Positions 292 through 41,370 of a DNA stretch of 64,000 bases are shown here, piece by piece. Every line of letters begins with the position of its first letter. The stretch's first letter is position 1. The notes under the pieces are model-generated. The model saw nothing but the letters and a program-made list of their open reading frames with translations. It ran no database searches and was not told the DNA's origin. Both the position numbers and the translations under genes were made by a program. Source of the DNA: Oikopleura dioica (Eukaryota > Animalia > Chordata); contig OU015566.1 of assembly GCA_907165135.1 (NCBI GenBank), positions 4,402,001-4,466,000 on the forward strand, read 5' to 3'.

Positions 292-1653
292 CCTCAGTGG
301 CGTCATCTTGACAAAAATATTCAAGCAAGGGTAGATAAACAACTCAAAGCAGGGCAAAAGAAGTAGGATGAAAACCGAGTTGAAAAGTTGAACTTGATCT
401 GGCCGCATTTTGAAGCTCTTCCCCCAGTACCCGTCCATCTGAGTAGCTGTCAGTGTCCAGCGGCTGCCTTGCATGTCAAACAGCGCCCAGAACATGATAA
501 TGGGAAGGTACATGACGACAATCGGCCACACCCACTTTGCATCTCGGATCATCCAACTTGGATACTTGCTCTTGTCGGCGTAGGACATCAAATCTGCATC
601 TGGATCTCGCTCTTTTTTGTCAGTTTTGCAGCGATTTCGGAGCGCGTTCCAAGTAGCGCCGAGAAATAGGGAAAAGACATTTTGCCCCGTTGGAGGTTTT
701 CGAATGTAGTACGGAGTTCCAACGAGGAAAAGAACGAGAGCAACCGCCATCAAAATCGATGGAACGGCAAAAGCAAGGACGTAGCTCAAGTCGCGAAGAA
801 TGGGAGTTATGAAGGTGGAGCAAAGACTTCCAGCGTTGATGGCGAAGTAGAAGACGGTGAAAAAGGAGGCGATGTGTTTTCGGCCCCGCTCAGTGGAATC
901 ATCGAACTGATCACCTCCAAGAGTCGACACACAAGGCTTGATTCCTCCCGTTCCGCAGGCAATGATGAAAAGAGCCGCCAATGCGAGTCCCATATTCACG
1001 GCTTGTCCAACTCCCGAATCGTCAAATTCCACCGCCGAAACGGCCATCAGCGCCATTCCAGCACAGTAAACAATCGAAAGGTAGAAGATGGTTTTGTACT
1101 TGCCCCAGTAAGAATCAGCCAGCATCGCGCCGAAAAGAGGGGTGAAATAACACTTTTGCGGGTTTTTCTTTTTCTCGATTTTCAAGGTCAAATATGAGAA
1201 AAGAGCAACCCTGTCAGAGCGGCAAAAGCGTGGTAAATCTCAACGGAGACGTCGTTACTGAAGCCAATAAAATAAGTCAAGTAGAGGACGAGAATTGAAC
1301 GCATGCCATAGTAAGCATATCTCTCGCAAAATTCGTTTCCAAGAATGAAAGCCACCCACCAAGGGTATCCTGAGCAGCACCCATCCCTCTGAAGAATTTT
1401 TTTGAAAAACCTTAATTGCAAATCGAGTTCAAAAGGACTGTAATATTTTGGGTCTCGAAGTGTTTGATATTTTATGCTAATTGAATTTATCGTGATTCCG
1501 CTCGGAGGCCGTTTATTATTATTAACGTTCACTAATATACAACTCATGAAATGAACTCACCAATGAATCATCGAAATCAGGGATCTTTTTATATTTTGGT
1601 TCATATAATTTTCTTGATATGTAATTTCTCAAAAGCGTTGCATATCTCATCAT
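292..1653 (-). CDS. SLC15A: Proton-coupled oligopeptide transporter (POT/PTR2, PEPT1/2-like), 5' part; continues off the left edge
   Basis: Exons about 1653-1561, 1388-1212 and 1152-292. Contains the ExxERxxYY motif (NEFCERYAYYGMR), the PTR2 signature region (GAMLADSYWGKYKTI), GTGGIKPCVSTLGGDQF and FYFAINAGSL. Ends at a GTAAGT donor at 291. Confidence 0.93.
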
Positions 1654-2153
1654 AATATCATTTCAAATATTTTTCTGTGAAACTTTTTTTTTGTTGTATG
1701 GTGCCTCAAGGCTATTCGAGCCGAAATTGATGAGCTAGAATGATTCATCTTTGTACTTAAAAATTCCACTCTCTTGCTAATTTTACCCCGAAAATTATGC
1801 CCGTTTTTGAAAATTTTAATAATTTCATTTTTGAGTCAAAAATTTTCACCCGTCAAGACTAACCCTAACTTTTCAAAACTCGACTTACTTCAACCTCTGT
1901 CTGATCCTCCACCACAAGCTCCTCCTCTTTTTTCTCCTCTCCCATTTTCTTCAGTCAAAAAATTTCAGAAAAAACTAGATCTTTCCCGATTTTCCGTAGC
2001 CACCTTTGATAGTCGACCTTTGTCGAATTTGCTTTGGCATAAAAACTCATCGAAGAAATTACTTCTATCGGTGAGATGCGGTTTTTGGAAAAGACTGCGT
2101 TTATTTGAACATTTCTAAATTCCTGTCGGGATTTTGTTGCAAGAATTCGGAGC

Positions 2154-2539
2154 TCAGACAAAGAAATTCGGGGTGTTTTCGGGAAAAGAAGCGCGTTTTT
2201 CGGGCTTTTTCAGGTCTGAAAAGCCTTCTGGAGGTTGGTAATCCATGCAGATGTAGGTTCTGAAAGAATATTTGAGAAAAAAATTTTTGCGAAAATTTAC
2301 CTCGTGAAATTATCGCAGGCGTCCCCGATATGAGCCATTAGCTCCTGGGACATTTCATCGGTTTCTTGGTGAAATCCCAGCTCGGCTAAAACAACAAATT
2401 TAACTTCGCTCAATTTTTCCTCAATACTTTCGGCGCAGAGGGAATAAATCTCGACGTATTCCTCGACAAAGTTTGCCGCTCCCGTTGCAGTTTCAAGAGC
2501 AAACGCAGAGAGTGGTAGAATTAGTTTTGAAAATATCAT
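2154..2539 (-). CDS. Small putative secreted protein (about 114 aa, 2 exons), unknown function
   Basis: Hydrophobic N-terminus MIFSKLILPLSAFA. A phase-2 GT-AG intron (2300-2260) joins exons 2539-2301 and 2259-2154 in frame. Confidence 0.5.
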
Positions 2540-3207
2540 CACTTCAAATGAATTTTTTTTTTAATAAAGTCGATTTTCCAAGAAGTTTATATACCTTCAA
2601 CTGCTGAATTAGTAATGCTTAAGGTCATTTGGATTTGACGCGGGACAGATTGACAGTAATGGACTCTCCTTGATTACTGAAGCTACTAAATGGGAAGTTG
2701 ATAAGTTTTTTTTTCTTTAACCCTAGCCGGCCAAGGTACTCCGAATTTGGAGTAGGGTTTTTTCATTTTTCACATACCCCCGATATTTAACGAAATTCTC
2801 ACTAAGAATCAAGGGAATAATTGAGCTTTTGATACCTACGTATTTTTAGATTTTTTCGGTAGGAATATGAATGTGTTTCATTACGCTCATTTGGGAAAAT
2901 TAACTTGTCTGGGCTCGATAGTTTCCGCGATCTTTTGCCTCCTCAATGATCCGCTCTTCAAAATTGTTAATAATATCCTCGACCAGGATCCTTTCTGGGT
3001 ACGTTGAACAAAAGTACCTGTTTGGCAAATCATTCTTAGTTGATTATTCTGGTGCTGGTCATTTCGCTCGTCATTCTACAAAGTCCTTTTTCTAATCAAA
3101 ACGACCAGATAATTTGCTGCTAACATGTTATAATCTGCTAACGGAATTCTAAAAAATGTAAATCGCAGTGAGTAGTCGTGAATCGTGATACTGAATCAGT
3201 AAAATAT

Positions 3208-3830
3208 TTATCTAAAGCCGGAAAATTCCCTTCCGGAAAATGAATTTTTCTGCTGCTGCTCGAAGCGACCAAATCCACCCGTACCACGTCCAAAGCCGCC
3301 ACCGAAGACACCGCCAGAATTGTTGCCAGAACCAAATGAGCTGCTTTGTTGGTTGCTACTGCCAAAAGCGGATGAGCCGGACGCTGAGCTGCCACCGAAC
3401 GCAGTTGAGCCAAAGGGACTGACGCTGCTGCTACCGAAGGCGCTGCCTCCAAACTCGCCACTTGAACCTAAATAAACTTCGTTTCTGATGTCTATTTAAA
3501 ACTTTCTTTGTTGAAAAAAATCTTTGTTGGTTGCTACTACCAAAAGCGGATGAGCCGAAAGCTGAGCTGCCACCGAATGAAGTTGACCCAAAGGCTCTGA
3601 CGCCGCTGCTACCGAAGGCGCTGCATCCAAATCCGCCACTTGAACCTAAATAAACTTCGTTTCTGGTGTCCATTTAAAACTTTGATACCTCCACCTGAGC
3701 CCGAGAAAGGACGAGTTGCCCCGCTTCTTCCAAAAAAGGACCAGAAGATGATTGTTGATTACTGGAATTCGAGAAGCCGAATTGGTTTGCAGGCGCGTTT
3801 ACAACAAAGCTCGAATTCTTACAAGTTTAA
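3208..3830 (-). CDS. Gly/Ser/Phe-rich FG-repeat low-complexity protein; start codon unresolved
   Basis: Spliced exons (about 3830-3689, 3645-3524, 3468-3208) read NQFGFSNSS...GSSGGFGCSAFGSS...AFGGSSAFGSSAFGSSNQQ...GGVFGGGFGRGTGGFGRF...FR-stop. A MITE lies immediately upstream. Confidence 0.55.
3345..3672. repeat. Tandem duplication of an approximately 180-bp exon plus intron unit
   Basis: 3345-3492 and 3523-3672 are near-identical, including the intron tail cttgaacctaaataaacttcgtttctg. Confidence 0.9.
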
Positions 3831-3838
3831 TTTATGGG

Positions 3839-4508
3839 TATAGTCATCGATTTTGGTCGGGTCTCCAATTTTTAATCTGAGCCCATTTTTAGAATCCCCA
3901 TAAAATTCTGAGCAAAAAGAATGATTATTTTGGCTATCTTAACCCATTTGGCCACAAATTGCGTTTGAAAGTGGCGAAATTTAGTGCATTCTGGCCATTA
4001 GCCGAATATTTTAAAATTTTGACCATTTTAGGGGTTTTGTAAGGGTGCCATATGATACATTTTTTGAAAGCTTATATTCAGGGCATTTATTAAGGACAAC
4101 GTAGGGTAAATTTGGGCCATGCCCGCAGGGCATTTTATCAAAGTGAAAGGTCAAAATTTGGTACCTTGGTTCTTTTAAAAATTTTTCAAAGAAAATCTTA
4201 TGATTACAGTATAAGGCTGTGTCATTTTTAAGATAAGGGTCTATTATTTAAGAAAATAACATAAAATAAATAGGTTTATATAGAAACTTTGGATTTATAA
4301 CGCCTTGAAAAGAGGCTATTTTCGCGTTCTTTGGCCGAGAGCTCAACTTTGAGCGATCCGAAAACCATGATTTCCTTGAAAATATCGTAAAAGGCAGTAA
4401 CAAAAGTGAGATCTAGGATAGATCTTTTATATGACCTATTTAAGAGCCTCCCACATATTCCAAGTCCCGAGTTATAGCCCCTTAGAATCGGCCAAATCGA
4501 CGACTATA
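3839..4508. mobile_element. Non-autonomous DNA transposon (MITE) with about 20-bp TIRs
   Basis: TATAGTCATCGATTTTGGTCG ... GGCCAAATCGACGACTATA. Internal approximately 550 bp homologous to 5550-6120 and to part of 44130-44290. Confidence 0.7.
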
Positions 4509-5414
4509 AATCGATATCTGCATGACATACATTTTTTGAACAAGAGTCCAAGGTGGCATTGAGAGCCAGAGGAGCCAAAGCTTTTCTCGGTCGGCGTGTT
4601 TTAACCGGCCCGATCATCGGTGGCTCAATGTCGGTCTATAATATTTTTACCATATTTTTCAAAATTTTAATTCAAACCCCAATATATCGCGCACCCTCTT
4701 CCCAATTTTCGTTGTTGTGTCCGTGCGCGGAGCAGAGATGCTGATATGGTTCGGAATTTATTCACAATCCTTGCTTGCTGAGCCTTGGAGGACACTGGGG
4801 GACACAATGTATTGAAGAGGTATAAAAAGTGGAGTTGGACTCATAAATTATAGAAACAGGCTCCCGAACTTTGTATCACCTCCTCGACCCCCAGCCCAAG
4901 GAATTCTTGCGCTCAAAATTACCGTTGCCAGAGTTGCAAATTTGCGTAGCGGAGAAAGCGGAGATACCTTCACTCATGGGCAAGGGGCGAGCATGGGAGG
5001 GGAGGGCGGGCGAGCGCGAGAGCATGAGCGGTACGTGCGCTTGCGAGCAGTATGAGGCTTGATTTTTTGATGGGCGGATGGGCGCGGGCAAAATTTGTCA
5101 AAATTTTTGGTGGTCGGATGGACGAGCGCGCCCGCCCGCGCACATTCTTTTTTCAAACACTGGAGCCGACGGCTCCGCTACGGGAAAAAAAAGCTACACT
5201 GAAAAAAATTCTGACCAGTTCCGCTACGGCCAAAAAAATTTTCGCCAGCTCCGCTTTGCTAAACTTTCCTCTCAGCTTCGCTATCTACGCTCAGCTACTG
5301 ATATTAAAATTAAGGCCCTTTTCTGTGTGAAAAAGGCCCTTATCTGTGTAAAATAAATTCTCAGTCAGTGTAAGTCACGTCCCTGGCCGTTTCAGCTATT
5401 TCAGCTTAGCTTAA

Positions 5415-6189
5415 GGGGGGAGGAGGTCGGCGAGAATTTTTTCAGACGTGATCGTAATTTTGCTTATACGCATAGTCAGGATATGAATCTTATATTTTCT
5501 GAATCTACAGATCCTCCCGAATCTTTCGTCAAGTCTCAGAATCGGTTTTTGACCACTTTTTCTGAATCTCCATGAAATTCTGAGCAAAAAACTCCGTATG
5601 AGTATTTTCTCTATCTTAACCCATTTTCGCACAAATTGCAAATGAAAATGGCAATAATTAGTGCATTTTGGCTAAAACGTGGAAATTTTAAAGTTTTTAC
5701 AATTTTTGGTCGTTATGTTAGGGTATCATATGATACCTTTTTGGAAAGCCCACGTTCAGGACATCTATTTGCGATGAGAACGGCGCATTTTGGGCTATGC
5801 CCGCAAGGCAATTCACGGAGTCAAAGGGACGGAAAATGGGTACCTTCGTACTTTAAAATTTTTAACATAGAAAATTTTGACCAATTGAAAAAAGCTCGTG
5901 TCATTTTTAAGATTAGGGTCAAAACTTTACCCTTCAAAAGAATCGAGGGGGCATTCATTGCTCACTTTGGAGGAGAGTCGCCCTGAATATTGGCTATTCT
6001 CGCGATTTTTCGCTGAGACGACAACTTTGAGCGAACCGTACGTGACTTTTCTCTTAGAATTTCGAAAAAAGCTCGTGTAAATCAGAAGATCTAAGATTGA
6101 ACTTTAATTTGAGCCATTACACGCCTTCCCAGCATTGATAGGTTCGGAGGAGAGTCTCGCTGCTTTGGGCCTGTACGGGGACCCTACCC
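5415..6189. mobile_element. TTAA-flanked non-autonomous element with GGG/CCC termini (Kolobok-like)
   Basis: TTAA|GGGGGGAGG ... CCTACCC|TTAA. Interior is a diverged direct copy of 3900-4480. The TIR match is weak. Confidence 0.5.
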
Positions 6190-6544: not shown

Positions 6545-6662
6545 CAGTGCGCTTGCTCAAAGTCTGCTCGCTCAGCTCACGCTTGTTTTTTTTTTAAACG
6601 CTCAACCGCTCGCTCCGCTCATGAATTTTAAGCGGTCGACCGCTCAGCCGCTCGCTCAGCTC
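6545..6662. repeat. CGCT(C/A)-rich short-repeat cluster
   Basis: gctcgctcagctcacgct, cgctcaaccgctcgctccgctca and ccgctcagccgctcgctcagctca; a similar cluster lies at about 5190-5300. Confidence 0.6.
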
Positions 6663-19131: not shown

Positions 19132-21736
19132 TTATTTATTTTTTCTTTTTATAGAAAAAAGCCTTTTTGCAAAGAACAACGGAAAAGCCAGCATCAAAAC
19201 TTGCACAGCGATGAAAAAATAGAAAACAGCGATAAATCCTTCTTTTCCAAATTTTTTCGAAATTTCTTGAAAGCCAAAAGTGGACAAGCTTTTGAGATTT
19301 TAAGATATTTTGTTCGCAAATAAAAAAAACCTGGTGATTCCAAGAATAAGTCGTTTGATGCCAATCAGGAAGCCATAGTACTTTTCGTCGAAAAGAAATC
19401 TGCAGATAACAGGAGCGAGCGCGAATACCCACGCATCGAAAATTCGCAGCAAGAAAATTATCGACAGAAGATTTTCTTCAGTGAAAGAAAGCTTTAACGG
19501 AGTTATGAGCCGGATGTAATGATATCAATGTTATGAAAATAATTTTTAAGTGTTATCTTGTTGAACTCTAGCTGAAGAATATTCATTGTGATTCCAACAA
19601 TAAGATTTAAAATCACGAAAATCAGACACCCAAGAAGTTTGCCAAAATGAGCAGGTCTAGATTTAATGCATTTTCCGAGAGCATCAGAGATACATCCACA
19701 TGGCAGCGTGAAAAATGCCGCTGTCCAAGCGAAATTGCCAAAGTCGTCAACATGTTTTTGGTAGGAATCTTTGGCGACGAGTCTTGTGTAAGCGTTCCAG
19801 GTCATGACGCAAAAGAGCAGGTTGAAATTTGCTTGGACGATCCAAACAACAAGGAGGATATAATTTATATCAGAGCACTGTTTTCTTATATCCTTAAGGG
19901 GGTAGATGTCAAGAATCGGACTTCCTGTCAGTGTTTTTTCAAATTTTTAACATAATGACACCCTTATTTTTTTTTTTGCTTAAAATTTATTTCAGGCAAT
20001 TATCTCTTTCCTATGGAAGCCAAAAATTGAGATTTTTTAGCTTTCGAGGTGCTACAATGGAAACCGGGCACCTTCGATTGCCGGCAAAATGACCACTTTA
20101 GGAAAAAAAGCGATCTTTGACGAAAAATTTTGTGAAAAATTTTTTTGAAATTCAAAATTTCGGCTTTCAAACCAGGGTTCGGTATTTTGAATTCGTCGAA
20201 AAATTCGCCAATACACGCAGCGAATATGCTCTTTTCTTAAGCGAATGAGCGATTGTTCGCGAATCGCCTATTCGGGCGAATATTCGCTCGAAATTGAGCG
20301 TACAGCCCTGGATTGGCTGAACTCCAGGGCCGCGGGTGAGAAAAGGGTGGCGCCCGCGAGCTATAAGGTTATTTAGGCGGTGAAGATAAAATTATAGGCT
20401 GCGCAACGTCAAAGCCCGACCAATCAGAGCGCGCGGCAAAGCGAATGTTTGAGAAATTCGCTGAATTTCTGAAAAATTCTCCGAGAAAATTCGTTTTCAT
20501 TCGCTTTGAATATTCGCTCATTAGAGAATATTCGTAAACGAATAAATAGAAAATTCAAATGAAAAACGAATAATTTCGCGAATTCAAAATACCGAACCCT
20601 GTTTCAAACGAAAAAGAAAAAGGTCCAAAGTTTTTGTTTCCGTAGTAAAATAACTTATTTTAAATAAGGGTGTCACTATTTTAACTTTGGGAAAAAAGTC
20701 TGACGGAAAATGGCGATTCTTGATATCTACCCCCTTAAACTTGATCTTTTCTTTCTCGATCAAATATTCTCTGTGCACTTCGCTCCAAGTGGACATTCTT
20801 CGCTTGTTGATCCTTGTGTCCTTCTTCTTAATTCTCCCAACCGTCTGCCCGACAATGCTCCTGGAAAAACTCGAAACGTCGCTCTTAAATCTGATGACAG
20901 GGAAGAGAAAAAATGTTCGCAGCCAAACTGGAATCGTCCAAAAGATATTTATAAGGATAACCCAATTGTAGGCAAGGCCATTTTTGAAGAGAGTCGCTAA
21001 AACGCGAAAATACGACCATCCAGCGAGGTAGAAAAACTCGACGAAACTCATCACGAAAGCGCTGATATTCGGGAACAAAACAGACATGAGCGAGTTTGTG
21101 AGGACGAATGAGTAGGTTCCACTAGAATATAGAAAGGTTGCTACGTTTTCGGCTCGAAAAATCTGGTTAAAAATCAACTCTATTAAAAATTTAACTAATC
21201 ATTAAACAAATTTTTTAAATAAATTTTATAAATCAATTATTATTTATTATCAATATTATTGAAATAATAAAATATAATTAATTTAAAAAATATTTTAAAA
21301 ATTTAAAAAATTTTTTCGGCCGTTTCTAGAAAAATCAGCCAGTTGGCTTGCGGCGTGAATAGAAAACACAAGAGTCCAATAGTCACTGCAATGGTGAGTG
21401 CTACTCTTGCCATAAACACCCCATATTTTTCAATCATCACTCCAACAAAAATAACACAAATGCTGTTCGAGAAGGTGCCGATGATCCCAGCCAGAGAAAA
21501 AAGGCTATCGCGCTCTTCGCAATTGATGATCTCATTTGTCATTGTCGTCGAGTTCGAAAGCGTGTCACAAGAAGATTCAAAGACTTTGAGCGATTTCAAG
21601 ATTTCAACAAGATTTGGCCATCCTAAAAAAATGGTTAGTTTTGTTGGCGAAAGGTGGACTCACCGTAAATAGTTCCGAAAAAGGCAAAGCCTTCAATGGG
21701 CAAAGTAAAAATGAGCAAATAATTTGAAAGAGTCAT
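19132..21736 (-). CDS. SLC43A: MFS transporter of the SLC43 (LAT3/LAT4/SLC43A3) family
   Basis: GFAFFGTIYGWPNLVEILKSLKVFESSC, multiple TM helices, FGVMIEKYG motif A-like region, and C-terminal YYGFLIG. The frame runs through the TTAA-element insertion once it is spliced out. Confidence 0.75.
19898..20734. mobile_element. Kolobok-like MITE (837 bp) inserted in SLC43 coding sequence and forming an intron
   Basis: TTAA|GGGGGTAGATGTCAAGAATCG ... CGATTCTTGATATCTACCCCC|TTAA with about 75-bp imperfect TIRs. The empty site restores K-F-K-D-I-R-K-Q-C. Confidence 0.9.
20173..20601. mobile_element. hAT-type MITE nested in the Kolobok-like MITE
   Basis: Perfect 8-bp TSD TTTCAAAC (20165-20172 and 20602-20609), 23-bp TIR CAGGGTTCGGTATTTTGAATTCG, and many CGAAT/ATTCG subterminal motifs. 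Confidence 0.93.
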
Positions 21737-22179: not shown

Positions 22180-23719
22180 ATGAGATTTTTGCTATCAACT
22201 TTTTTCTTTTCTTCGTTTGCAGCAGTTTGTACGATAGAAACAGCCAAATACACAGTGAATGCGATTTTGGGCAAAGATGGAGAGTGCGACTTTGAAAATA
22301 GAGAAATCGAAGAGATCGTCGATTACAGCTTTCCTAGTGGACTGACATCCTTAAATTTAAGGTGCTGACTTTTCGTAATTGACAACGAGACTAATATTTT
22401 TAAGATTCAACAAATTGACGAGCTTAAATTTAACGCAAATGGAGCTGAAACTTGAAAAACTCGATGTCAGTTACAACGAACTCTCCTCCCTCGATGAAGT
22501 CGACCTCTCATCGCTAGAATTTCTCGACGTATCTTCCAACAACTTAACCTGCATCGACTTTCAAGAGCTTCCGAAGAATATTCTTCTTCATAAAAATCCA
22601 ATAAGCTGCGATTGGGAAACGCTGAAACCTTACTTTGATTTTTCTCCCGATCGAAGGAGCAGAAAAGGGATCGAATTTGTCTGTGAGACGCCTGAAGAAC
22701 TCGCGGGAAGATCGATCAGTTCGTTGACAAAGCAAGATATTCAGGATCTTTCATCGAGTTGCAAAGAAAACGAAGAAGATACCATCAGTCCGGATGAGTT
22801 CTGCAGGTAAAACAAAAGAAACCACCCTTATTTCATGAATTCAGCTAGGGTGTAGGGCGGCCACGTTCGCAATTTGCGAACGCCGTTCGTAATTTTGCGA
22901 ACGGCGTTCGCAATGAAATAAAATTGTGTCTTGAGGATGCACTTCGTGCATTTTCTGGTAGAGAACTCATTAGGTTGGCAGGAGCAGTCTTTCTCTACCG
23001 CTGGGACACATTTTGAGAAAAGAAGAACTCGATTTTCGACCGAGATTTTTTCGATTTTGCGAACGCCGTTCGTAAATTGCGAACGCCGTTCGCAAAAAAG
23101 CCTTTGCGAACGAGGCCGCCCGCCACCCTTCAGCTACATTGGAGTCATTTTCGTGGGAATAACCTGCACTCTTGTTTCGATGACTGGTCTTTTCGCCTTC
23201 ATCACTTACCGGTAAGACCTCTTTATTCTTCGTCATCCTCAAATCCCTAGAAATCGCAACTCTCCGTTCTGGTCCCTCATCGATTCTTCCGACCAACCCG
23301 GCCTTTTCGACATGAATTACGATGGCGATAGAGACAGTTTGGCTCTGTAAAACTACTGTAGAAAAAAATTCATCACCATATCTGCCATAGCCTCATATTA
23401 AAGATGCGATTCTGCTTTTCTAGAATGCTAGAGTTCAGGAGTTGAAAAAGTTATTGCAAAGTTTGAAAGAAAGAGAGTATCGTCGCGTTTTTTCGCTGAA
23501 AGGAGCTATCGAAATCATGAAAATCTACTACAACCGAGCTGGAAATCGTCAGAGAAAACTGTCTCTTCAGAAGCACAAGGTATGGAATCCTCATTGATCA
23601 TGGTGGGGAATTTCTAGTTCGATTTGAACCAAGCTGGGACGATTTGGAAGAGCGCAATGAGAATGCATCGTGCTTTGCTTAACGGCGATTTTACTGTTTT
23701 AGATGAAGGAAGGTTATAA
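22180..23719 (+). CDS. Type-I membrane leucine-rich-repeat protein
   Basis: Signal peptide, LxxLxLxxN repeats (LTSLNLRFNKL, LEKLDVSYNEL, LEFLDVSSNNL), LRRCT (NPISCDW...FVCETPEELAG) and TM YIGVIFVGITCTLVSMTGLFAFITY. The cytoplasmic exons after 23250 are tentative. Confidence 0.82.
22847..23129. mobile_element. MITE inserted at the 3' splice site of an LRR-gene intron
   Basis: 26-bp TIR AGGGTG(TA/GC)GGGCGGCC(A/T)CGTTCGCAA, flanking TCAGCT duplication, and internal TTGCGAACGCCGTTCG repeats. Confidence 0.85.
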
Positions 23720-28311: not shown

Positions 28312-29371
28312 ATGCAGCCAAACCAGGGAGAAGTGGATGCTTGGGGAAACCCAGTTGATGCTTATGGACAGCCAGTTGCCCCCGCTCAGCCACAGGTAGA
28401 TGCATTCGGCCAACCCCTCGCCCAGCAAGCTCCCGCTCAGCCTCAAGTCGACGCCTATGGCCAGCCGGTAGCTGCGGCTCCTGCTGCCCCAGCGCCAGTG
28501 ATCATCAACATCCAGCAAAACTGGGCTCCAGCTCCCCAAGGCGTTCCAAGCTCCGTTCCTCAGGGACTCGAGTACCTCTACTTCGTCGACAGCCTTTATG
28601 TCAAACAGCAAATGGAGTTGTTCGAAGCTTTCACTGCTTTTGAAACATCAAACAGATACAAGGTCAGTTTCGATTTTTAATAGAAAAATGTTCAATTTCA
28701 AAAGGTTTTGAACAGCAATGGCCAACAAGTCTACTTTGCTGGAGAACAGAGTGGATGCGTCGCGAAATGTTGCTGCGGACCAAATCGAGATTTTTAAATG
28801 GCGATTACTGACAATCTTGGGCAAGAAATTGCGAGATTTCAGCGGCCATTCAAGCCTACCTGCAGATTTGGCCTCTGCTACCCTCCATGCTTTCTTCAGG
28901 AAATGGGTAAGCAATTTACCCATCATCTAAGTTTGTTCTCATTGTTGATTTCAGATGTGACAACAGGCGGCCACATTGTCGGTAAAATCCGCCAAAAGGC
29001 TGACTGCTCTCGACCAGTCTTCTCGATCCAAAACGCGTACGACCAAGAAGTCCTCCGAATCGTTGGTCCCATGGTCACCATCAACTGTTGCAGCAACGTC
29101 GAGTTTGAAGTCGTCACAGCAGACGACATTGTTGTCGGAAAGGTTTCAAAACTTTGGAGCGGCATGGCGCAGGAAATGTTTACCGACTCGGACAATTTTG
29201 GAATCAACTTCCCGATCGATTTGGATGTCAATATCAAATTGACGCTCATGGCCAGCGTTTTCCTCATCGTAAGTTTCAATCGACTGAAAATACGAAACCC
29301 TTTTGTGCTAATTTCAATTTCAGGATTTCATGTTCTTCGAAGATAAGGCACGAACTAAAATAGGGAAGTAA
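28312..29371 (+). CDS. PLSCR: Phospholipid scramblase; last exon interrupted by a MITE
   Basis: Pro/Gln-rich N-terminus with VDAYGQP repeats, PQGLEYL, FETSNRY, CCGPNRDF, VGKVSKLWSG, FTDSDNFGINFPIDLDV and IDFMFFE. Confidence 0.93.
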
Positions 29372-29700
29372 TAAGCTAGGAAGTGACAGCGTAGGAGCGA
29401 ACAAGAAAGTATCATACACGAAAGGATCAAATAAGAAAGTATCATACATGAAAGTATCAAATTAAATAGGATCATGCATTAAAGGATCGAATTTTTTGGA
29501 ACCAATAAGATTGCCGTATAAGGCCTACCGGCCTATAAGAAACCCATCCTCAATCATTTTCAAATGTATGCCCGATCCAATCTTGCACGATACTGGCTTG
29601 GATCTTCCATTATAATTTGATCCTTTCGTGTATGATACTTTCTTGTTCGCTCCTACGCTGTCACTTCCTAGCTTATTACTTCCTTATTTTGGTTCGGCCC
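29347..29700. mobile_element. MITE with GG termini and an 8-bp TSD (Merlin-like)
   Basis: TSD GAAGATAA at 29339-29346 and 29701-29708, with near-perfect approximately 88-bp TIRs. Confidence 0.9.
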
Positions 29701-29899
29701 GAAGATAACAACAACAAAGATGGCGGCGGAAACAATCTCCTTTGCTGCCTTCTTAAAACGATTCTTGGAGGAGGAGAATAAACTGTTTGAATTTCCTGTT
29801 CAAGATGTCTGAAAGAATACACAACTTATATTTTTACAAAATTCGTCTTTATTTATGAAAAAGAAAGTGGCTAGGAAGGAACAAAATTTTAAATTGGAA

Positions 29900-30144
29900 A
29901 TCAAAATGCAGAAAAACTTCAAGCAGAAATTTTGTTTTTGTGAGCTCTGAAAGCCATCATTTTTCGGCAGCGAGGATTTGAAATACAGTAGCGCATCCTG
30001 TAGTCTACAAAAAGCATTCAAAATTATCTTTAAACGAGAGAGACTTACTCGTAATCGGGTTTGAAAATGCTTTTTCGCGCGATTTTGCGGAGAATCGCCA
30101 AAAATGCACGCAAAAAGAGTGAAAACAACGAGGACTCTCATCAT
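29900..30144 (-). CDS. Possible small secreted peptide or protein
   Basis: MMRVLVVFTLFACIFG signal-like N-terminus and a GTAAGT donor after QTRLR. The downstream exon is ambiguous. Confidence 0.3.
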
Positions 30145-30796
30145 CAATCGTCTCAAACGGTCTCCTCGAGCTTTTTATATTAAGTAAAATGATGAAAAAT
30201 GCATGAGAAATTGTCAAATACTATTGAGATAATGGATGTGTGCAGAGCTATGTCATTAATACTGTATATTCCTATCAAATGAAATGGAGCAATCAGAAAA
30301 AAAAAATGAAGAAAAAAGACCTTAAATTTTCATCTTTTTTAACTCTTTTTTGAAAAAGTTAAAAATATAAATTATTCTCAAAAGTTGCCAAAATCAATGT
30401 TCCTGTCAAATGGGCATTAATTTCTCGCGCGTCCGTTAAACTTTACAAGTTCAAGGTTCGTCCAGCTGCTGCCAAGCCATCATATCGATAGTATCGGATT
30501 TAGAAAGTGATGGATCATCCCATTAGCCTAATTCGTCACAAGCAGGGAAACAAAGATTAATTTCCACGAATTTGCAAATTTGCATTTCAATTATTAACTA
30601 AAAAAGGGACCGTCATTAGTCAAGTCTTCTCAAATGGTAAGAAATTATAATTAACATGCGTTGGGTTAGAATTTGCGATTAATTTCTTTAAATTTTTACA
30701 AAAATAAGGAATTTCCCCATTTTCACAGTTCGAAAACTCGTTTCAACTTGGTCTCTACTATCTTCAAAAGTTGGTTTCTAACTGAAACACTTCACG

Positions 30797-31406
30797 ATGG
30801 CGAAATTGATAACGGAATTTTCATCGGGTGATTCTCTCCACTCCTCATTTGATTTTCGAAAAAGGAGTTTTCAAACTGATTTTATTTAAAAAAATAGAGA
30901 TTTGCGAGAGAGAGAAAAGGCAACTGTTAATGACTTGAAGCCCTTTTTTATTTTTTAGCCCATTTTATTTTTGTAATTTTAGACATGAAGCAAATGATTA
31001 TGAATTTGGACATTCTCGAGCTTTTTCTTGATCTAAGTGGAGCGGCCATCGTCTGGTTTATCGCCAAAATGCAAGAATTTATTTTTTTTAGCAGCCGAAA
31101 ATGATTTTTTAGGTTCTATGAATTTCGACACTCGTCTAAAATCAAAGAACTCAAATTGAAGTTTGAACTCGACATCGTGGAAGCGGATTACAAGCAGGCG
31201 AAACATATGCAAGACTTTTACCGCGAACAATACGAGTAAGTTTAAATCTTCTCAATCAAATTAACATTAGATAACTACTAAAATAACTGTTCTTCAGCAA
31301 ACTGTTCGAAAGAAAAATGGCGCCCGCAGAGCCTCCGCGCCGATACCAACGATTGGAAACCGTCAGTTTTGGCGACCTCGGCCAGCCTCGTGACGCTGGA
31401 GACTAG
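30797..31406 (+). CDS. Small single-pass membrane protein with a coiled-coil tail (4 exons), unknown
   Basis: MAKLITEFSS|DMKQMIMNLDILELFLDLSGAAIVWFIAKM|FYEFRHSSKIKELKLKFELD...EQYD|KLFERK...DAGD-stop. Intron 2 must be GC-AG. Confidence 0.6.
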
Positions 31407-32290: not shown

Positions 32291-32829
32291 ATTTAAATGG
32301 TTTTCAAGCTAAAATTAGGGTTGAATCCGGAGAAAAGCTGCTTTAAGCTGTTTATTGTTGAGAGAAAAAACAGTATCGGTGGATTTTCGCGGCCATTTAG
32401 CGTTGCAATTAATTTTTTATTTCGATTTTGTATCTTTTTTATGTGACAAACGGAAAAATGTCATTTCGTCTAAGTGCCATATTTGAGGCGTGTGCCCGAA
32501 TTCTCTCGGGCGCCAAAAAAGAGCGGCACCTGTCCATTCCGCGCAATCGCTTTTTTAATGAAATAAAGTGAAAACATATGTTTTCGAAATGACGATATCG
32601 AAAATAAGAGAAAAGTAATGACAAGATTGAAGATTTGTTTATTCCTGTTTTCTGTGTATAATTCCTTTTGAAAGAGTTAATTTTTGCGACGACTCTTTCA
32701 TCTTCTAAGCTCCTGAGTCAGGAGTCCTGATTTCTTATCAAGACCTGACTCAGGAGCGAATTTTTCAGTTCAGAAGAGAAAATGAAGTTTCTTTCCCTTC
32801 ATTCTCTTCTCTGACTCAGGAATCCTGAG

Positions 32830-32988
32830 CTGGGCTCGGCAACCTATGTCGAAAAACTGAGTCAGATTCTAAATAGCAAAAATGATAAGCCGCCCGAAGC
32901 GGCCTCGTTCTCAATTTAGCCGCCATGCGGCTTTTCATTTTAGCGCTAAGGACCTGACTCAGGTTTTCTCACAGGTCGCCGAGCCCAA
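32830..32988. mobile_element. C(A/T)GGGCTCGG-TIR MITE with an 8-bp TSD
   Basis: TSD ATCCTGAG / ATCCTCAG (7/8). Preceded by a cluster of CTGACTCAGG motifs (32712-32821). Confidence 0.82.
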
Positions 32989-33315
32989 ATCCTCAGGTGT
33001 AATACTGTATTTATGCAGCGAGCCGTCACTTGTTTCGGTACTCATCTTTGTCCATCCCATTACTCGCCATTAGTTTCGCTAGTAACAAATCAATGCATTA
33101 GCATAATCATCAAACTGAATAATTGATCAAGTGCGGGGTCGCTTGTTTAATTCTTTCTTTATTCCGTTAGTCAAACTTTATTATCGACGGATTTCGCGTC
33201 GCCCTGTTCAATGTCTTTCTGCGACTAATGAAGATCATCTCTCCGCTGATCCATTTTCTTTTCTGTTTCGTTCACTCACCTTTTCAACCCTTTTAGAATG
33301 AAAAAATAAGAGACA

Positions 33316-35512
33316 ATGATCCTCTTCCTTGCTCGGATCTTCCTTTTGACCTCGTCAGCTCTCGCGGTGGATTTTACAGTAACGATCGAAAATGACTTCA
33401 CGATTCCCTGCCCAATCGCTCAACTGCCCTGCTCAGGAATAGATTAAACCCTCTTTTCAACCCTTTTTTCTTAAAGAAAGACTTGTTTAATCAATCAAAA
33501 CAGAATCGGAATGCGAGAAGATCCAGATTATCGTCAAAATCAACGAAAACAAAATCTTCGAAAAGGAGAAAGCTGTCAGGGACAGGGCTCGACAACCTGT
33601 GTTTAAATCTGAGTAAGGGTCCTGACTCAGGGTCTGAAAAGAAGGCGGTTCTTCTGGCAAAGCCGCTTCCTTTTTGATAAACTGCTGCTTTTTCTTAGAG
33701 TCTATTTCAGGACCCTTACTCAGGTTTTAACACAGCTTGCCGAGCCCAGATCAGGAATGGACAGATTCTGTCCGATTACGAGATAAATCCTAAGAGCGAG
33801 AAATTCGAGTGGAACTGGGAAGCTGGCGGGTTGACCCTGAAAAATACAAGTATCAAAGATAGCGGAAAATTCACCTGCCATATCAAGTAAGAACAAAATT
33901 TGGGAAAAAAATATCTGAAAAATTCCAAAAGAGTTCGAAAAAACATCATTACCGACGACAGTACGGACTTCTCGACGTACACGACCCTGACCGTCCAGAA
34001 AAAGCCCCTTCTCATCAAGGCAGAGCTGCACCAGAGCTACATCGAAGCAACCGAAGACTCAGGGTTGAAGACGATTGCCTCTTGTGTTTACGATCCTGGA
34101 AAACCTGAAGCGATAGTACGATGGGTGAATGGACTGAACGGAGCTGCACTACAGCAGAACTTTTTCAAAACCTCCATTACCAGGTAAAAAGACAGTTTTA
34201 GTCTTTTAGTAAGCTAGATTTTTCATTCAGATTGGAAAATCAATACACTCAAGAGCTGCAAATGATCCCCGACAAAAAGTTCAACAACGCGTACATTAAG
34301 TGTTCCCTCTCTCATCCCCTGTTGACGGACGAAAGCGAATCGATGAAGTTGAATGTCACCTACAAACCCGCCAAGCCCAATATTGTCCAGAACGGGGATC
34401 GCTTATTCTGCGCTGCTGAGGTAAGAGTTGGTCTTTTGGATCTGCTACATGCGGACAGGTAGATTATCTACCGTAGATATTCGGAAGAGCTCATTTTGTG
34501 TTCAGGGAAATCCAATGCCGACGATTTCTTGGGAAGTTGAATCCGAAGATGACGATGTAGTGACGACGATTGCCGAGACAAATGTCAAGATTCGCTTTCT
34601 TGGAGCTCGAAACTTGAATTATACTTGCAAAGGAAAGGTTGAAAAAGAAGAAAAACGACGTTCAGTCAGTCGAATTTAGTTCAAAAGCAATTCTTTTTCA
34701 ATCCTGAGAAGCCGCGAACTTTATGGGAACTTCTGAGAGCACCATTTCGAATCTATCGATAGCAACTGTTGCTGAAATCCGCGAGAAATATACAGTCTTT
34801 GCTGGTATTATCATCGGAGCTGTCTCTCTTATTTTCATTATCGGAATCGTCGTTTGCCACTTTGCCTGGAAGTCGACGAAGGAAAAAGATGAAAATGAAT
34901 CTGGATGGTAAGAAAAGCAACTTTTGTGTTTCATTAGCGAGTTTTTCAAGGTCCGAGCCTTTGCAAATCACAATGACAGGCGGTCATTCGCATTCTGGCG
35001 CTGGTGATACTGGCGACTTCATCTACCGAGTTCCCGTTCCTCAAGAAAACAACTCCAAGCTCATGGACTACTACACTGCCACTGACAGCGGAACCGACTC
35101 GCACTCGATTGAGCCTGACGACTTTGAATCCTCTTTTGTTCGATCGGAGTCGATTCTTCAGGTAAAAAAAAAGAAATCAAGGACTATCTGAAGATTTCTA
35201 GGCATATCATTTGACTATGCCGATTTGGCGAGTTCCTAAAGCTGATAAACTTGAGGTTACTTTTGTGGCGTAGTATTTGTTGTTAATATTTGTGAATTTT
35301 GAATTCGAAAAAGATCTTTATTTTGAGAATAACTGTCAGTTTTAGGGTCAACAACGCGAGAACGCGAGAGGTCAGCATTTCCAACCGCGATTCAAATAGT
35401 AAGTGATCCCTTCCACTTCCTTTGTCAACCCTTTATCCTTAGTCACGAGGGCTATCACAGCGAGCACGACCTGCTAAATTCATCCACCGAACAGCCCTCC
35501 CAAGTTGTCTAA
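33316..35512 (+). CDS. Immunoglobulin-superfamily type-I membrane protein (nectin/CADM-like architecture, 3 Ig domains)
   Basis: Signal peptide, LTLKNTSIKDSGKFTC, SCVYDPGKPEAIVRW, KCSLSHPLL, CAAEGNPMPTISW...YTCKG, TM FAGIIIGAVSLIFIIGIVVCHFAW, and a multi-exon cytoplasmic tail. Intron 1 (33437-33503) is GA-AG. Confidence 0.85.
33583..33749. mobile_element. hAT-like MITE that constitutes intron 2 of the Ig gene
   Basis: TIR CAGGGCTCGACAACCTGTGTT / AACACAGCTTGCCGAGCCCAG (18/21), TSD GTCAGGGA / ATCAGGAA (6/8). Intron 33575-33749 equals the element plus one TSD. Confidence 0.88.
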
Positions 35513-35637
35513 AGCTGCCGTTTCATCCCCTTTCCCTTCCACCTGTTAACTGAGAAACAATATATTAAAACTCTATTTATTCAAAATAGCGATTGAACAG
35601 GAGCAAAATCCCAAGGCCCTCTCACTCGAGCTCATTT

Positions 35638-35686
35638 TTTCCTCAAAGCAACTTCCAATTGTTGGTTTTGGTCGCTAAGAATCATT
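35638..35686 (-). promoter_or_regulatory. Candidate form-2 SECIS element in the GPx 3' UTR
   Basis: The minus strand reads AUGAU-UCUUAGCGAC-C-AAA-A-CCAA(caa)UUGG-AA-GUUGCUUUGAG-GA: UGA/GA quartet, helix II, unpaired AAA and an apical mini-stem. It lies downstream of the stop (35813) and upstream of AATAAA (about 35578). Helix I is weak; folded by eye. Confidence 0.65.
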
Positions 35687-35812
35687 CTATCCAGCTTGGC
35701 AAGTGAGAGAGCGCCTTAAGATCCGAGAAGGAAACTTTTCGCGTTAATCCAGCTACAAATTGTTGCAAAATTATTTCATCCCCGGGCTCCGATTCAACTT
35801 CTGCTTGAAGGT

Positions 35813-36906
35813 TCAGCAAGCAGGTTCTTCAAGAAGGAGCGCGACGACCTGATCTTCCCAGGTTTCTGGATGCTCTGGTGGCTCGTGTCGCTGTCGGACT
35901 CGCCCGCAGCGATCGATCACGAAGTTGGTAAAGTTCCACTTGATCGGTTGATTCTTGCCGGGCTCGGTCGACTTCATCCATTCGTACAGCGGGATCTGGT
36001 CCGGCCCGTTGACGTTGATCTTGGACATCATGTCGAAAGTAACTCCGTACTTTTCTTGGACGTGCTCCTTGATCTCCTCATCGGTGCCTGGCTCTTGGCC
36101 GCCGAACTGGTTGCATGGAAAGGCCATGACGGAAAGGCCCTGGTCTCCGTAGATTCTCCACATATCCTGTAGCTGGGGATAGTGGTACTTGGCGTAGCCT
36201 CATTCGGACGCGACGTTGGTCACTAGGGTCGGACCCTTTACTAAGGATTCCTTAGTCGCTAAGGGTAAGGGTTTCGAAATTGCGGAAAATCAAAAAAGGA
36301 CTAAGGAAAGGATTAAGGACTTTTCTGAAACCTGACAAAGGATAAAGGAAAGGGTTTTTTCCTTAGTAAGGATTTAAAAAAGGAAAAGTCATTTTTTTGT
36401 GATTCCTTAGCAATTTTTCCTTAATCCCTTTCCTTACTAAGGGTTTTAAAAAGGTTTTTCGTAAGAATCGGTTTTCAAGTGCGTAGGTTGACAGAAAAAA
36501 TCCTTTCTCAAACCCTTAGTAAGGGAAGGAAAAAAGGAAAAATCACTAAGGATTAAGGGTCCTTACTAAGGGTCTCTGAAAACTGAGAAAGGAATTAAGG
36601 AAAGGATTTTATTTCTTCAAAATCCGAAAAAGGGTAAGGAAAAAATAAAGGAATTAAGGAAAAAGGACCCTTAGTAAGGAAAAAATAAAGGAAAGGAGTC
36701 CGACCCTAGGTTGGTCACGATCGTCACTCGGCCGCGGTATTTTTCGCCGAAGTCGATCAGCTCGCCATCGATGTTGTAGTTTTGGAAGTCGTAGAGGGTG
36801 GTTTCCTCCAGCGGCACCGCTAGAAAAATAAGTTAAATAAACCCCCTTTTCTCTGGTTTTTGTCTCTTACCCGAAGCAATGGCCAGAGCAGCCGCAAAAA
36901 TTCTCA
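35813..36906 (-). CDS. GPX: Secreted selenocysteine glutathione peroxidase (GPx4/PHGPx-like)
   Basis: MRIFAAALAIAS signal, KYRGRVTIVTNVASE-U(TGA, 36200-36202)-GYAKYHY, AFPCNQFGGQEPG, and IKWNFTNFVIDRCG. The CDS is interrupted by a MITE at 36223-36709. Confidence 0.9.
36223..36709. mobile_element. MITE (487 bp) with CTAGGGTCGGAC TIRs inserted five codons before the Sec codon
   Basis: Perfect 8-bp TSD GTTGGTCA (36215-36222 and 36710-36717). Interior full of CCTTAG/TAAGG motifs. Confidence 0.92.
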
Positions 36907-37309
36907 TTTCTGCTGCTCGAAAACGCTTTTTCTCTCGATTTTAAGGAGTTGCTCTGTCAACAAAGGTGGCTCGATTCCCATCTTATACTCCTATTTGCGT
37001 AACATTTCAATAACCTCGTCCAACATCTTGCTGTTTCCCGAAGAGTTCCAACCTTCGGGGCATGAACTTGAAAAAAATGAAGTTCACACGTTATCATTTT
37101 TGATTTTAGAAATTGTGTTTGTTCGAAAATATTGACATGGTGCTTGTGTACCAGCAAATAAATACCTTCGCTGAATCATTTTTTGAGCCAAAAATTTCAG
37201 GAAGCTGAAAATGAAGCTTCTTTATTCTTTGATCGGTTTATGTTTCTCATACGGTGTTGACAGAGAAACCGCAAATGGTAGATATTTTAATGAAAAAGGA
37301 CGAATAAAA

Positions 37310-38380
37310 GGTTACTTTGAGGATTTTTATCGAGAAAACCGAGGTGGGGATTCGGCCTGGAAGAATTGCAAGAGGGAGATTTAGAACGCGAATGCATAGA
37401 GGAAACCTGGAACGTTTTCAAAATATCGAATAATTATTCCGAGATCTCTGATTAAGAGGTTCTCCTTGGAAAGCCAAAAAAGCACAAAGAGTGAGAACTT
37501 CGAATGTTTCGACCACGATGAGCGCCACAACGAAAGTTGGAGCAAAATCAACGGGTGCTGGACCATGCTCGAGCTCAAGTAAAAATGCAACAAAGGACCT
37601 CAATTATTTTTTCTTTGAAGGAAACAAGTTATGAACCCGACAGCAGTTCGAAATTGCTACTCAAACGACGATCGAACTCTCCCACCAGAAAAGTAACAAT
37701 TATTTCCATGGCCAGGAATGTATTTACAGTCATATTTGATTCGCAAATGAATAAATTACAGCAGATCATCTCCTTCTTTACTTTCAATTTCTTCCCCATT
37801 CTTTGGCACAATTTTCGCTTCTTTGACTATCACATATACTGCCAGGCAGGACATCTAAGAGACCGTAAGAAACCGTCAGCTTGGTAATTTCTAATAGACT
37901 TACGGCAAAAGAGCTAGAAACGAGGATCCACATAAGCTGAGTCCCTTTTGATTGGAAGATATGACAAATTTCGTATGTGCAGTTTTGCTCAGAAGACCTA
38001 AAAAATAATTTCAGCGAAAAAAAAGTAATTTTTTTTTTTCAAGTAAAAATTTGAAATAATTTGAAATCATAAACAAGTTCAAATCCTTGACTAAAAATCC
38101 TCATCCGCATCAGATTAGGATCCAATTAACACTTCTCAAAAGCGCACTCACCTTGACAAGCCAAGAGCCATCATTCCAGCGAGAAGGAACAAGGTGCTGA
38201 TTACCATCAGCAGAATAAATCTCTCCGAAAACTCTGGAAAACTTTTAACTTGGCGAAAGGGAGGTTTTAACTTGCCAACAACGAGGAATCTCTCCGACTG
38301 GACCGGCACGGAAATTGATCTGGAACGGACGGCGCGGGCATATGCTTGCGAGATGATTGACTCGCGGCGACTAAGGAATT
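37310..38380 (-). CDS. Uncharacterised multi-pass membrane protein (multi-exon)
   Basis: Hydrophobic exons FILLMVISTLFLLAGMMALGLS, LMWILVSSSFA|MSCLAVYVIV, FLAMEIIVTFLVG and FVVALIVVETFEVLTLCAFLAF, separated by short introns. Boundaries are approximate. Confidence 0.5.
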
Positions 38381-39099
38381 TTGAACGGAAAAAAGGCTGA
38401 TTTTTTAAATTTAAATTCGATTTTTAGAAAAAAATATTCGATTTTAAAGATTATAATTGGCGAAAAAACTCTCTTTTTCGATTTTTTTCTATTTTGTTTA
38501 TTTGTTAATTCTTAATAAAAATTATAAAAGCTCATTTTTGATCTTACTTTTGATCAATTGCCATTTGCTTCTTTGACTTTTTCTTCTCTTAGGGTATTTC
38601 GGGAACGAAAAGGTTTTCTTTAATTTTGTGGTTGAAAGTAAAGTGGACCTGCTAACAGTTGAATTGTAAATCTTGTTTCTCAAAGAAGACTCGCGTCAAG
38701 CGTCACCCCTCAATGAACCTGACTCGAGCAGGGCTCATATTCTCGCATTAATATTCGCATATAATATGAGATGCTATATGTGTACAGGGCGGTTCGGTTC
38801 ATCATATGACTTAAGGGTGTCAACAACGATTTTCAGCCAACTTTTGACCCTGGTAGAGATACCTTAACTTGGGTTGTTCAAGATTTTTATATGCCAAAAG
38901 TAAGTTTAAACCCTTTTGTGACGCCTCTGAAAGCCCGATTTCGGATTAGTACTTTCGTCAATCCTCCCGCCGACTTCAAAGGAAGCTCGTTTTACACAAA
39001 AAAGGCCCTATAATAGGGATAACTTTTGACCCCCGTTACTAGAATTCTAGATGAGATGTGATCATGAGATGTGAAGCAGTTTTATTCGTGTAGAAGAAA

Positions 39100-41370
39100 T
39101 TAAACAAAGAGGTTGACAAAAGTAAATTTCTGATTTTTATCATCAGCATCGCAATCTGCAAAAACGACTCTTCCGCTTGAATTCGTGATATTTCTGAATT
39201 TCAGACATCTTTTTCTTTCCTTGTTGTCTCCAAAGCGAAATAAGAACGAAACCATTCCAGTCGTTTCATCAAAATCCCATCCAGCGTCATTCTCAGAACA
39301 GTCATCGGAAAGTTTTATCTCCGAATTTACGCACAAGTCTCTTTGCCTCAGTTTCCCGTTTTCAGTGAGTCGGAAGATCTGAGAAGGCCGCAATTTATTG
39401 CAATTCCAAGTTTCTATTTTCCCAGTGTACTCGTAACCGCTATTTGCGTCCAAACACTGGGATGTATTTCGCACTTGAATGGCGCCCCAGATTTTATTCA
39501 TCGGAGGCGGCGGTGATTCTAGAGCAACTCCAAAAGCGATTTCTGAATTTTAAAATGAAAGCTCAATAAAAACCTCGTTTGAGGAAGAACCTTTCATAAA
39601 CCAATCAAAATCATGAGGGCAATGATTTTTCCTGAATTCAAGCTGCTTCGAAATGTCGCCAAATTCGATGTTTTTCGCTTCAGGCCGATCTGCGTAAAAA
39701 TATTTCTTCCAATCATCATCAAACCAAGTTTCGACAACCCGCCGATAATTTCTCACCGAAGAACTCGGCCGAAAAACGGGAGGATTTCCATTCCACTCCA
39801 GGTCTCTGTAAATGTGTCCAACTCTCGAGCAGGGTACGAATAAGAGCTCTCCGCCGCAAATCCAGAGTTTGAAGCTCAACTCGAAGTTTTCTCCACCCCA
39901 AATTTCAAGACCAGGATCGTAGAATTTCAAGTCTTTGAAGTACTGTCGATTGATCGCGAAAAGTCCACCTGCCATTGCCGGACTAGGATAGGGTTCGATT
40001 TTTGACACGAGTCTTTTCTTCTCGCCTTTTTCTTGGAAAGGTATTCTTTTCCAAGTCAGTCTCCAGTCCCATCCACCTGAAGAAAAAAATCAAATACCAC
40101 TTTGTGTGAGAAATACTCACAAGTAATGTAACAAATTTCTGTTGATAAATTTAATTTACTTAAAATTATTTTAAATAAAATTCTAATTTAACTTAAATTT
40201 AATTAAATCAATTTGAATTTTCTTTAATAATTTTAAAATTATTTAATATATTTTAAAAAATATAATAAATTTAAGTATTTTTTTAAATAAAGTTCATTTA
40301 TTGAATTCAAATTTATAATATAAATATTTTTTTTAGTTTGTTAAATTTTTATTTCTGCATAAACAGTACCTATTGCTCTACCCAAATCATCAGTTCCACC
40401 TTGCGCCGAAAAATTGAAATAATTCGCATCAATCTTGTCGATAATCGGCACCGTCGCGATTCGATCATTCCTCGCTATCGGAGCTAGAAGTGGCGGGAGC
40501 CAGTTGTACTCGGCTTCACAATGAGCATCGAGAAAAACAAGAACCTCTTTGATCGCAAGAGATGCGCCAATAGACCGGGCGCGGATCAGACCTTCGCGAT
40601 TTTCGTTTCGATGAATTTTGACAAGTCCATTCCAGCGCTGAATGTACTCGTCTAGTTTTTCTTTCAAATGGTTTCTGGTGCTGCCGTCATCGATGAGAAT
40701 TATTTCCCCAAGAAGCTTTTTCGGCGTTTGATTTATCACAGAATGGACGGTTCGGAGAAATGTACTCCATCCTAAATGAGGATCGGTATAATTTTTAACG
40801 AAAAATTTTCGGGCGACACTGGGAAAGTCGCCGAATGTCGCCGAAAAAAAGCAAAAAATAGCGACATTCGGCGACATTCGGCGACATTCGGAGACATTCG
40901 GCGACTTTCCCAGGCCGCCCCGAATTATCCAACCCTAGTCCTTCATTAAAAAAGACGATGATGACAGAAACTTCAGGAAGATTTTCCGGGTAGTCGACAT
41001 GTTTGCATTTCTGATCCCTCAGATCATCTGGAACCCGATCAAGTGGGATTTTATCGGAAACAATCATGTTGAAGCCATAAGTTTGAATCGACATTTTTGC
41101 TGCGTAATTCTCTTTTTCTTCCCAAGTGAATTCTTGCCTGCTCATTTGATAAACTGAATCGATTTCTTCCGGCTCATAATTTCCAAGTCTTCCGGAATCT
41201 CTGTAAACATCTTCTTTGATATTTTTATTGGGTCCATTTCCAAAAATAACGCCTTCAAAACCAGGGTAAATCTGAGAATCACAGCTCTTTTTGTCCTTCG
41301 TAAAAATAGCCAGCGCGAAGAAAAAGGTTGAAACTAGAATAAAAGAGGGGAGACGATTATTTCTAATCAT
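39100..41370 (-). CDS. GALNT7: Polypeptide N-acetylgalactosaminyltransferase (GALNT7-like)
   Basis: FNMIVSDKIPLDR, VSVIIVFFNEGWSTFLRTVHSV, FLDAHCE (DxH), GGWDW, SPAMAGGLFAI, WGGENFELSFKLWICGG, PCSRVGHIYR, and a C-terminal ricin-type lectin domain. The family is certain and the subfamily is inferred from QGGTDDLGRAIGGWDW. Confidence 0.92.
40777..40937. mobile_element. Aged hAT-like MITE that constitutes a GA-AG intron of GALNT
   Basis: Degenerate TIRs TGAGGATCGGTATAATT / AATTATCCAACCCTA, 10-bp CGACATTCGG internal repeats, and TSD remnants TGAAGGAC / TTTAGGAT on the minus strand. Intron 40772-40940 is 161+8 nt. Confidence 0.78.

Follow-up and report, generated by a model that had tools for sequence, protein, structure and literature searches.

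Introns derived from transposable elements are established in larvaceans (PMC11282704), with Fritillaria borealis carrying non-canonical introns that derive from miniature inverted-repeat transposable elements (MITEs) and have terminal inverted repeats (TIRs) and target-site duplications (TSDs) (Henriet et al., 2019, as summarized in PMC11282704). Here, four elements lying in coding exons of a 64-kb stretch of the Oikopleura dioica genome (the window; contig OU015566.1 of the Nanopore-based OKI2018_I69 assembly, GCA_907165135.1, from Okinawa) are compared with such systems. The host genes encode an Ig-like membrane protein (Ig), a GPx, an MFS-type transporter, and a GALNT. The best explanation, to which a probability of roughly 0.65 is attached, is that transposons of several families entered these exons at differing times, with the GPx insertion being young, the Ig insertion spliced, the GALNT insertion old and spliced, and the MFS insertion composite.

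As far as that summary describes it, the F. borealis system and the present case concern the same animal class and share lineage-specific intron positions, TIRs and TSDs at the intron borders, and the invocation of a permissive U2 spliceosome; however, most F. borealis introns are of this type and have AG-AC or AG-AT ends, whereas the candidates here are few, belong to several families, have GT, GG, or GA donors with AG acceptors, and include only one with RNA support. Introners have been described in Micromonas, dinoflagellates, fungi, and others (Huff et al., 2016; Gozashti et al., 2022, PMC9860276, the main text of which does not include Oikopleura). In introners, as proposed here, a DNA transposon provides one splice site and the target duplication the other, allowing exact excision, but introners are specialized families whose intronic copies number from hundreds to thousands, whereas the elements here are ordinary MITEs that, in this 64-kb view, lie mostly outside exons.

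In O. dioica itself, 11% of introns are non-canonical (PMC8008620), 76% of mapped introns occupy new positions and GA-AG introns make up 12%, with reverse splicing as the favored model (PMC4122922), and most introns are lineage-specific (PMC8008620, PMC4122922). Transposon-insertion introns are attributed to this species by Table 1 of a 2012 review (PMC3443670), which cites Denoeud et al. (2010); as that table presents them, those cases share the species complex and the proposed mechanism with the present ones, to which a population view is added here, with one segregating insertion and one insertion with deletion alleles. What makes these loci valuable is an allelic series (absent, present, and shortened) rather than a new mechanism.

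Samples and gene models

Elements were located by an inverted-repeat scan of the window, and gene identities were assigned by Pfam. Reads and contigs of four runs were aligned to 33250-37050, which covers the Ig and GPx sites: a wild metatranscriptome (X1), two runs with DNA contigs (X26 and X28), and a raw RNA run (X6). An earlier reading of the DNA letters by themselves (the sequence-only reading) had placed four elements inside coding exons, and this is borne out for all four. Pfam confirmed GSHPx, Glycos_transf_2 / Glyco_transf_7C, Scramblase, and PTR2 transporter domains; for the annotated Ig product it returned weak or faint Ig matches only. The public gene models of the region, taken from locus L004, which is this DNA read in reverse (window position = 46164 minus L004 position), are as follows.

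GALNT: 511 aa
Ig-like protein: 486 aa
Scramblase: 147 and 213 aa
GPx fragment: 116 aa

The element in the Ig gene

33583 to 33749, plus strand: hAT-like MITE of 167 bp with TIR C(A/T)GGGCTCGRCAAC, in an exon of the Ig-like membrane protein gene
32831 to 32990, strand unassigned: second copy of the same MITE family, with a 7/8 TSD (ATCCTGAG / ATCCTCAG)

The Ig element has TIR arms of 60 nt with 80% complementarity and is flanked by GTCAGGGA (33575-33582) and ATCAGGAA (33750-33757), a 6/8 match that becomes 7/8 in another haplotype, where the right flank reads ATCAGGGA. Several further copies of the family are present in the window, and the borders of the copy at 32831-32990 show a family that transposes with 8-bp duplications.

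A 215-nt RNA contig from the wild metatranscriptome joins 33575 directly to 33751, skipping 175 nt (33576-33750) that correspond to the element plus one duplication. The same contig also lacks the neighboring intron 33887-33931, as seen on comparing its loose end with the sequence, and a second contig from this run lacks the Ig-gene intron 34421-34505. Since ordinary introns have also been removed, these contigs represent spliced RNA. In DNA, window positions 33544-33860, with the whole element, are matched identically by one X26 contig; two more contigs, one from X26 and one from X28, start in unique sequence (flank or exon) and extend into the element. Internal deletion forms that keep both ends were found in X26 (−78 nt) and X28 (−96 nt), giving at least three length forms. 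No empty Ig site was seen among the DNA haplotypes sampled (window, X26, and X28), all of which carry the element, and the haplotype of the RNA contig is a mosaic of variants found in element-bearing haplotypes. Splicing is thus a likelier source of the 175-nt skip than an empty allele, and Ig is the one good case of a transposon-derived intron, though at a depth of 2.

An alternative is that all four insertions are disruptive alleles of the sequenced individual from which nothing is spliced, with the RNA junctions coming from empty alleles and the gene models being guesses of a gene finder. An empty site would produce the exact 175-nt skip as well, and the GPx element, described below, behaves just as this alternative says. 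Nevertheless, the sampled DNA haplotypes all carry the Ig element, which by divergence has given rise to deletion variants; this points to age and high frequency. The GALNT element, for its part, is eroded even though its 511-aa frame and domains are intact; disruption at all four sites is consequently considered unlikely. Under the preferred explanation, the Ig element would be an older insertion, present in all sampled haplotypes and removed from mRNA as a 175-nt intron. Its deletion forms look like a new intron shrinking toward the usual size of about 50 nt.

The observed junction reads ..GCTGTCAGGAATGG.., whereas a GT(33575)/AG(33749) cut on the window haplotype would yield GCT|ATC, so that the straightforward splice ascribed to this site by the sequence-only reading does not account for the junction unless there is a single-nucleotide polymorphism at 33750. 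Either the transcribed haplotype has G at 33750, which would be the ancestral state of the duplication, with a GT-AG intron, or a GG-AG cut is made at 33580/33754. The intron would have one end in the first duplication copy and the other at the ...CCCAG of the element, or lie 5 nt further on as GG-AG.

The target sites at 32823-32830 and 33750-33757 are very alike (TCCTGA / TCAGGA core), a hint of a target preference of the family that would put CAGG-like protosplice sequences at both ends of an insertion. Separately, the ordinary short introns 33437-33503 and 34633-34711 of this gene need GA-AG ends to keep the frame (..PCS|ESECEK.. and ..YTCK|EAANFMG.., respectively) and contain no inverted repeats.

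The element in the GPx gene

36223 to 36709, minus strand: hAT-like MITE of 487 bp with TIR CTAGGGTCGGAC and a perfect 8-bp TSD, GTTGGTCA, at 36215-36222 and 36710-36717

This element lies five codons upstream of the selenocysteine codon (TGA; tca at 36200-36202 on the plus strand). The annotated 116-aa fragment begins after that codon and is identical to the product of 35813-36163. In a 697-nt contig of X28, a run from another animal, 35709-36214 runs straight into 36710-36900, that is, the site is empty; because the first GPx intron is still present, this contig is genomic DNA. Two wild metagenome DNA contigs from Tara and ENA (L005 and L006, the Tara one a scaffold), 97% alike, likewise keep intron 1 and read ...ATCGTCACCAACGTTGCGTCCGAATGA... 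with no element, making three separate DNA sources of this lineage with an empty site, and the exon is uninterrupted in the Bergen genome (L001) and in two Logan contigs of the Bergen lineage (L002 and L003). No synteny was found between the Bergen locus and the window, and that comparison is limited to the GPx site. The element therefore looks like a presence/absence variant, and the empty-site alleles that the sequence-only reading had proposed to seek in other haplotypes do exist for GPx. A GPx contig from the metatranscriptome skips these 495 nt as well; DNA already has the joined form, and this junction is thus uninformative on splicing.

On the coding strand, exact excision would require a TG-AG intron; the frame is otherwise kept only by GG-AG, at the cost of 12 additional bases (LVTN) beside the active site. 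The insertion is read as young, and as rare or possibly private to the sequenced animal, and it is probably harmful to its allele. In the proposed scheme, it would be segregating or private, with the allele most likely disrupted or, otherwise, spliced in an odd way (TG-AG, exact; GG-AG, with four additional residues).

It is very improbable that the elements arose through misassembly of the Nanopore-based reference. No independent read set has been shown to bridge the GPx exon into its element, as such a view would have it; yet the X26 match to the window spans the entire Ig element, and transposition, unlike misassembly, leaves perfect 8-bp and TTAA duplications as its signature.

The element in the MFS transporter gene

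19898 to 20734, minus strand: TIR element of 837 bp with TTAA copies at 19894-19897 and 20735-20738 and TIRs matching at 24/25, in a loop-coding exon of the MFS gene
About 20173 to 20592, strand unassigned: nested hAT-like MITE within the TTAA element, with TIR CAGGGTTCGG.. and a perfect 8-bp TSD, TTTCAAAC

The sequence-only reading identified this gene as SLC43; Pfam supports an MFS match, and only a weak one. A sister-lineage genomic contig of 1459 nt from a metagenome (L007, product P0138) carries the exon uninterrupted, reading KEKVKFKDVRKQ where the window reads KEKIKFK|DIRKQ, at 71-80% DNA likeness. Because this contig reads straight through the site while keeping the neighboring introns, the insertion, judged by this comparison, is derived. 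A protein search with the MFS open reading frame (ORF) gave P0138 as its single match, and a representative search with the exon gave relatives only at ≤51% identity. The site falls in a variable cytoplasmic loop, outside conserved sequence.

Two splice options keep the frame: GG..AG at 20733-19893, which is scarless, and GT..AG at 20730-19893, which adds one Gly. The preferred explanation here would be a large composite element, in an exon continuous in the sister lineage, that may be spliced out. PiggyBac-type elements have CCC...GGG termini with a TTAA duplication; the termini of this element are GGGGG...CCCCC and so not of the piggyBac type, despite the TTAA duplication. A lone terminal repeat of the TTAA element family, TTTAAGGGAGTAGATATCAAGAATCGG, lies at 43009-43041, beyond the 292-41370 range of the sequence-only reading.

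The element in the GALNT gene

About 40777 to 40937, minus strand: degenerate, MITE-like hairpin element splitting the conserved NEGWST motif of the GALNT gene (FFNEG|WSTFLRTVHSV)

The sequence-only reading had set all four insertions within conserved coding sequence, which holds for GALNT and fails for the MFS loop. The hairpin arms are 38 nt long and match at 84-91%, and the termini are degenerate. The annotated 511-aa product, in which all three Pfam domains are intact, is obtainable only by removing 169 nt at the element, and two 169-nt introns fit equally well: GA-AG at 40940-40772, which keeps NEGWST, and canonical GT-AG at 40933-40765, which gives NEGLGT. On wide enumeration, 511 aa fits seven combinations, including both GA-AG and GT-AG at the element. 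The public annotation was made with AUGUSTUS and RNA-seq hints (PMC8008620), and product length does not reveal which splice site was chosen. Since the ends are eroded and yet the 511-aa frame is intact, the element appears to have long been spliced; it would be a hairpin of considerable age, by now eroded and acting as an intron of 169 nt.

A JGI metagenome genomic contig (L008, Ga0099826_10196185), probably from a larvacean in a marine metagenome, carries a 46%-identical GALNT with larvacean-type introns of about 45 nt and reads FHNEGWSPLMRTVHSV without interruption. The gene may be a paralogue, and the comparison weakly suggests that the GALNT intron is lineage-specific. A protein search with the N-terminal ORF of GALNT gave no match, and protein searches, which are weak evidence at best, put no empty-site ORF of the Okinawa lineage on record for GALNT or MFS.

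The possibility that the introns came first, with elements landing in existing small introns and no intron being gained, applies mainly to GALNT and Ig. No duplication is readable at the GALNT element, the ends of which miss the exact splice sites; relatives were compared at the GPx, MFS, and GALNT sites only; and MITEs in existing introns do occur in this region, as in an LRR gene.

22864 to 23085, plus strand: TIR element of the TAGGG type, located in the intron after the LRR exon (exon end at about 22807)

That intron begins directly after the exon, in agreement with the sequence-only reading, which had regarded the LRR element as absorbed into an existing intron. In contrast, what would have to be removed at Ig, GPx, and MFS is exactly the element plus one duplication, and no intron is found at the orthologous site in any of the six sources compared for GPx (L001, L002, L003, L005, L006, and X28), in L007 for MFS, or in L008, the only one for GALNT. 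Existing introns as the landing sites are accordingly judged quite unlikely. It had also been claimed that deletion of the element and one TSD restores each protein; the GPx empty alleles, the sister MFS exon, the Ig RNA contig, and the larvacean-like GALNT gene all agree with this.

Shared properties of the elements

Under the preferred explanation, the elements that entered coding exons would be cut-and-paste transposons, non-autonomous and belonging to three families or more: one TTAA family, plus two or three hAT-like ones that leave 8-bp duplications. Readable TSDs had been reported at all four sites, and this stands for the perfect 8/8 duplication at GPx and the TTAA at MFS and in part for Ig (6/8, or 7/8 in the other haplotype), but not for GALNT, where a TIR is present and the duplication matches at 5/8. 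A TIR starting with (C/T)AGGG is typical of hAT elements, and such a short TIR together with an 8-bp TSD is seen at the GPx and Ig elements, at the Ig-family copy at 32831-32990 (7/8), and at the TTTCAAAC element nested in the MFS insertion. No autonomous relative encoding a hAT transposase was found within the 64-kb window. Both the Ig and the GPx family are multi-copy, since DNA depth on these elements exceeds that of their flanks 5- to 25-fold.

All of the candidate introns form long hairpins when folded (z of −9 to −14, vs. about −2 for ordinary Ig-gene introns), and such long TIR hairpins would bring the splice sites together. All in-frame options end in AG and start with GT, GG, GA, or TG; none has the AG-AC or AG-AT ends of F. 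borealis. A role of GA/GG donor tolerance as the enabling factor, which the sequence-only reading had put forward, was not demonstrated, because GALNT also fits GT-AG and the sole RNA case is Ig. Its broader claim, that several MITE families are being converted into introns, is shown for Ig alone, where the 175-nt skip in RNA accompanies an element present in DNA; at GPx, the element looks like a presence/absence variant.

Several observations weigh against the preferred explanation. RNA support is confined to the Ig site, splicing at GALNT and MFS being deduced, and at Ig it consists of one contig of depth 2 from a wild metatranscriptome, in which an empty Ig allele is possible. The exon model, moreover, failed to reproduce the annotated Ig length of 486 aa. 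At GPx, the RNA junction is equally explained by an empty allele, and the contig that carries it departs from the window at 36784, 32 nt into exon 2, and continues for another 126 letters; this 126-nt end, which matched nothing in the window or in the loci of the relatives compared, may stem from chimerism of the contig, from structural variation, or from an alternative 5′ end. The raw RNA run is from a divergent lineage (90-95% alike), aligned only at the most conserved GPx exon, and was uninformative. Finally, the supposed GALNT duplication (TGAAGGAC / TTTAGGAT) matches no better than chance, and no second copy of the GALNT element exists within the window.

Other features of the window

29351 to 29696, plus strand: TIR element whose arms measure 129 nt, lying between CGAAGATAA repeats in the final exon of the scramblase (PLSCR) gene

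At this gene, the last 14 residues after DFMFFED are replaced by 8 others; the truncation inferred by the sequence-only reading is thus right in kind but small. The public annotation splits the scramblase gene (28312-31406) into the 147-aa and 213-aa models, the second of which spans 2.5 kb across the element to 31406. Short units of the TTTTCGACT(A)A type are repeated in tandem at window positions 1-240, adjoining the PTR2 transporter gene.

Implications

Where new introns come from remains a matter of debate, and O. dioica is known for massive intron turnover. Intron birth could be tested in a laboratory chordate at loci where one and the same insertion is missing from some animals and, in others, present, shortened, or spliced; this region offers such material. 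By the same token, an insertion into an exon must not be counted as an intron without genotyped RNA, even if it has a plausible splice solution.

A stronger proposal is that ordinary MITEs of several superfamilies become working O. dioica introns on arrival or soon after, the hairpin joining a G-purine or GT donor and an AG, each provided by the element end or by the duplication. This is advanced only tentatively and is, on balance, doubtful. If true, however, wild Okinawan animals would hold a living series, with a GPx insertion that has just landed and is harmful, an Ig insertion that is fixed and shrinking, and a GALNT insertion that is eroded and ordinary-looking, and the birth of introns would be traceable allele by allele in a culturable chordate.

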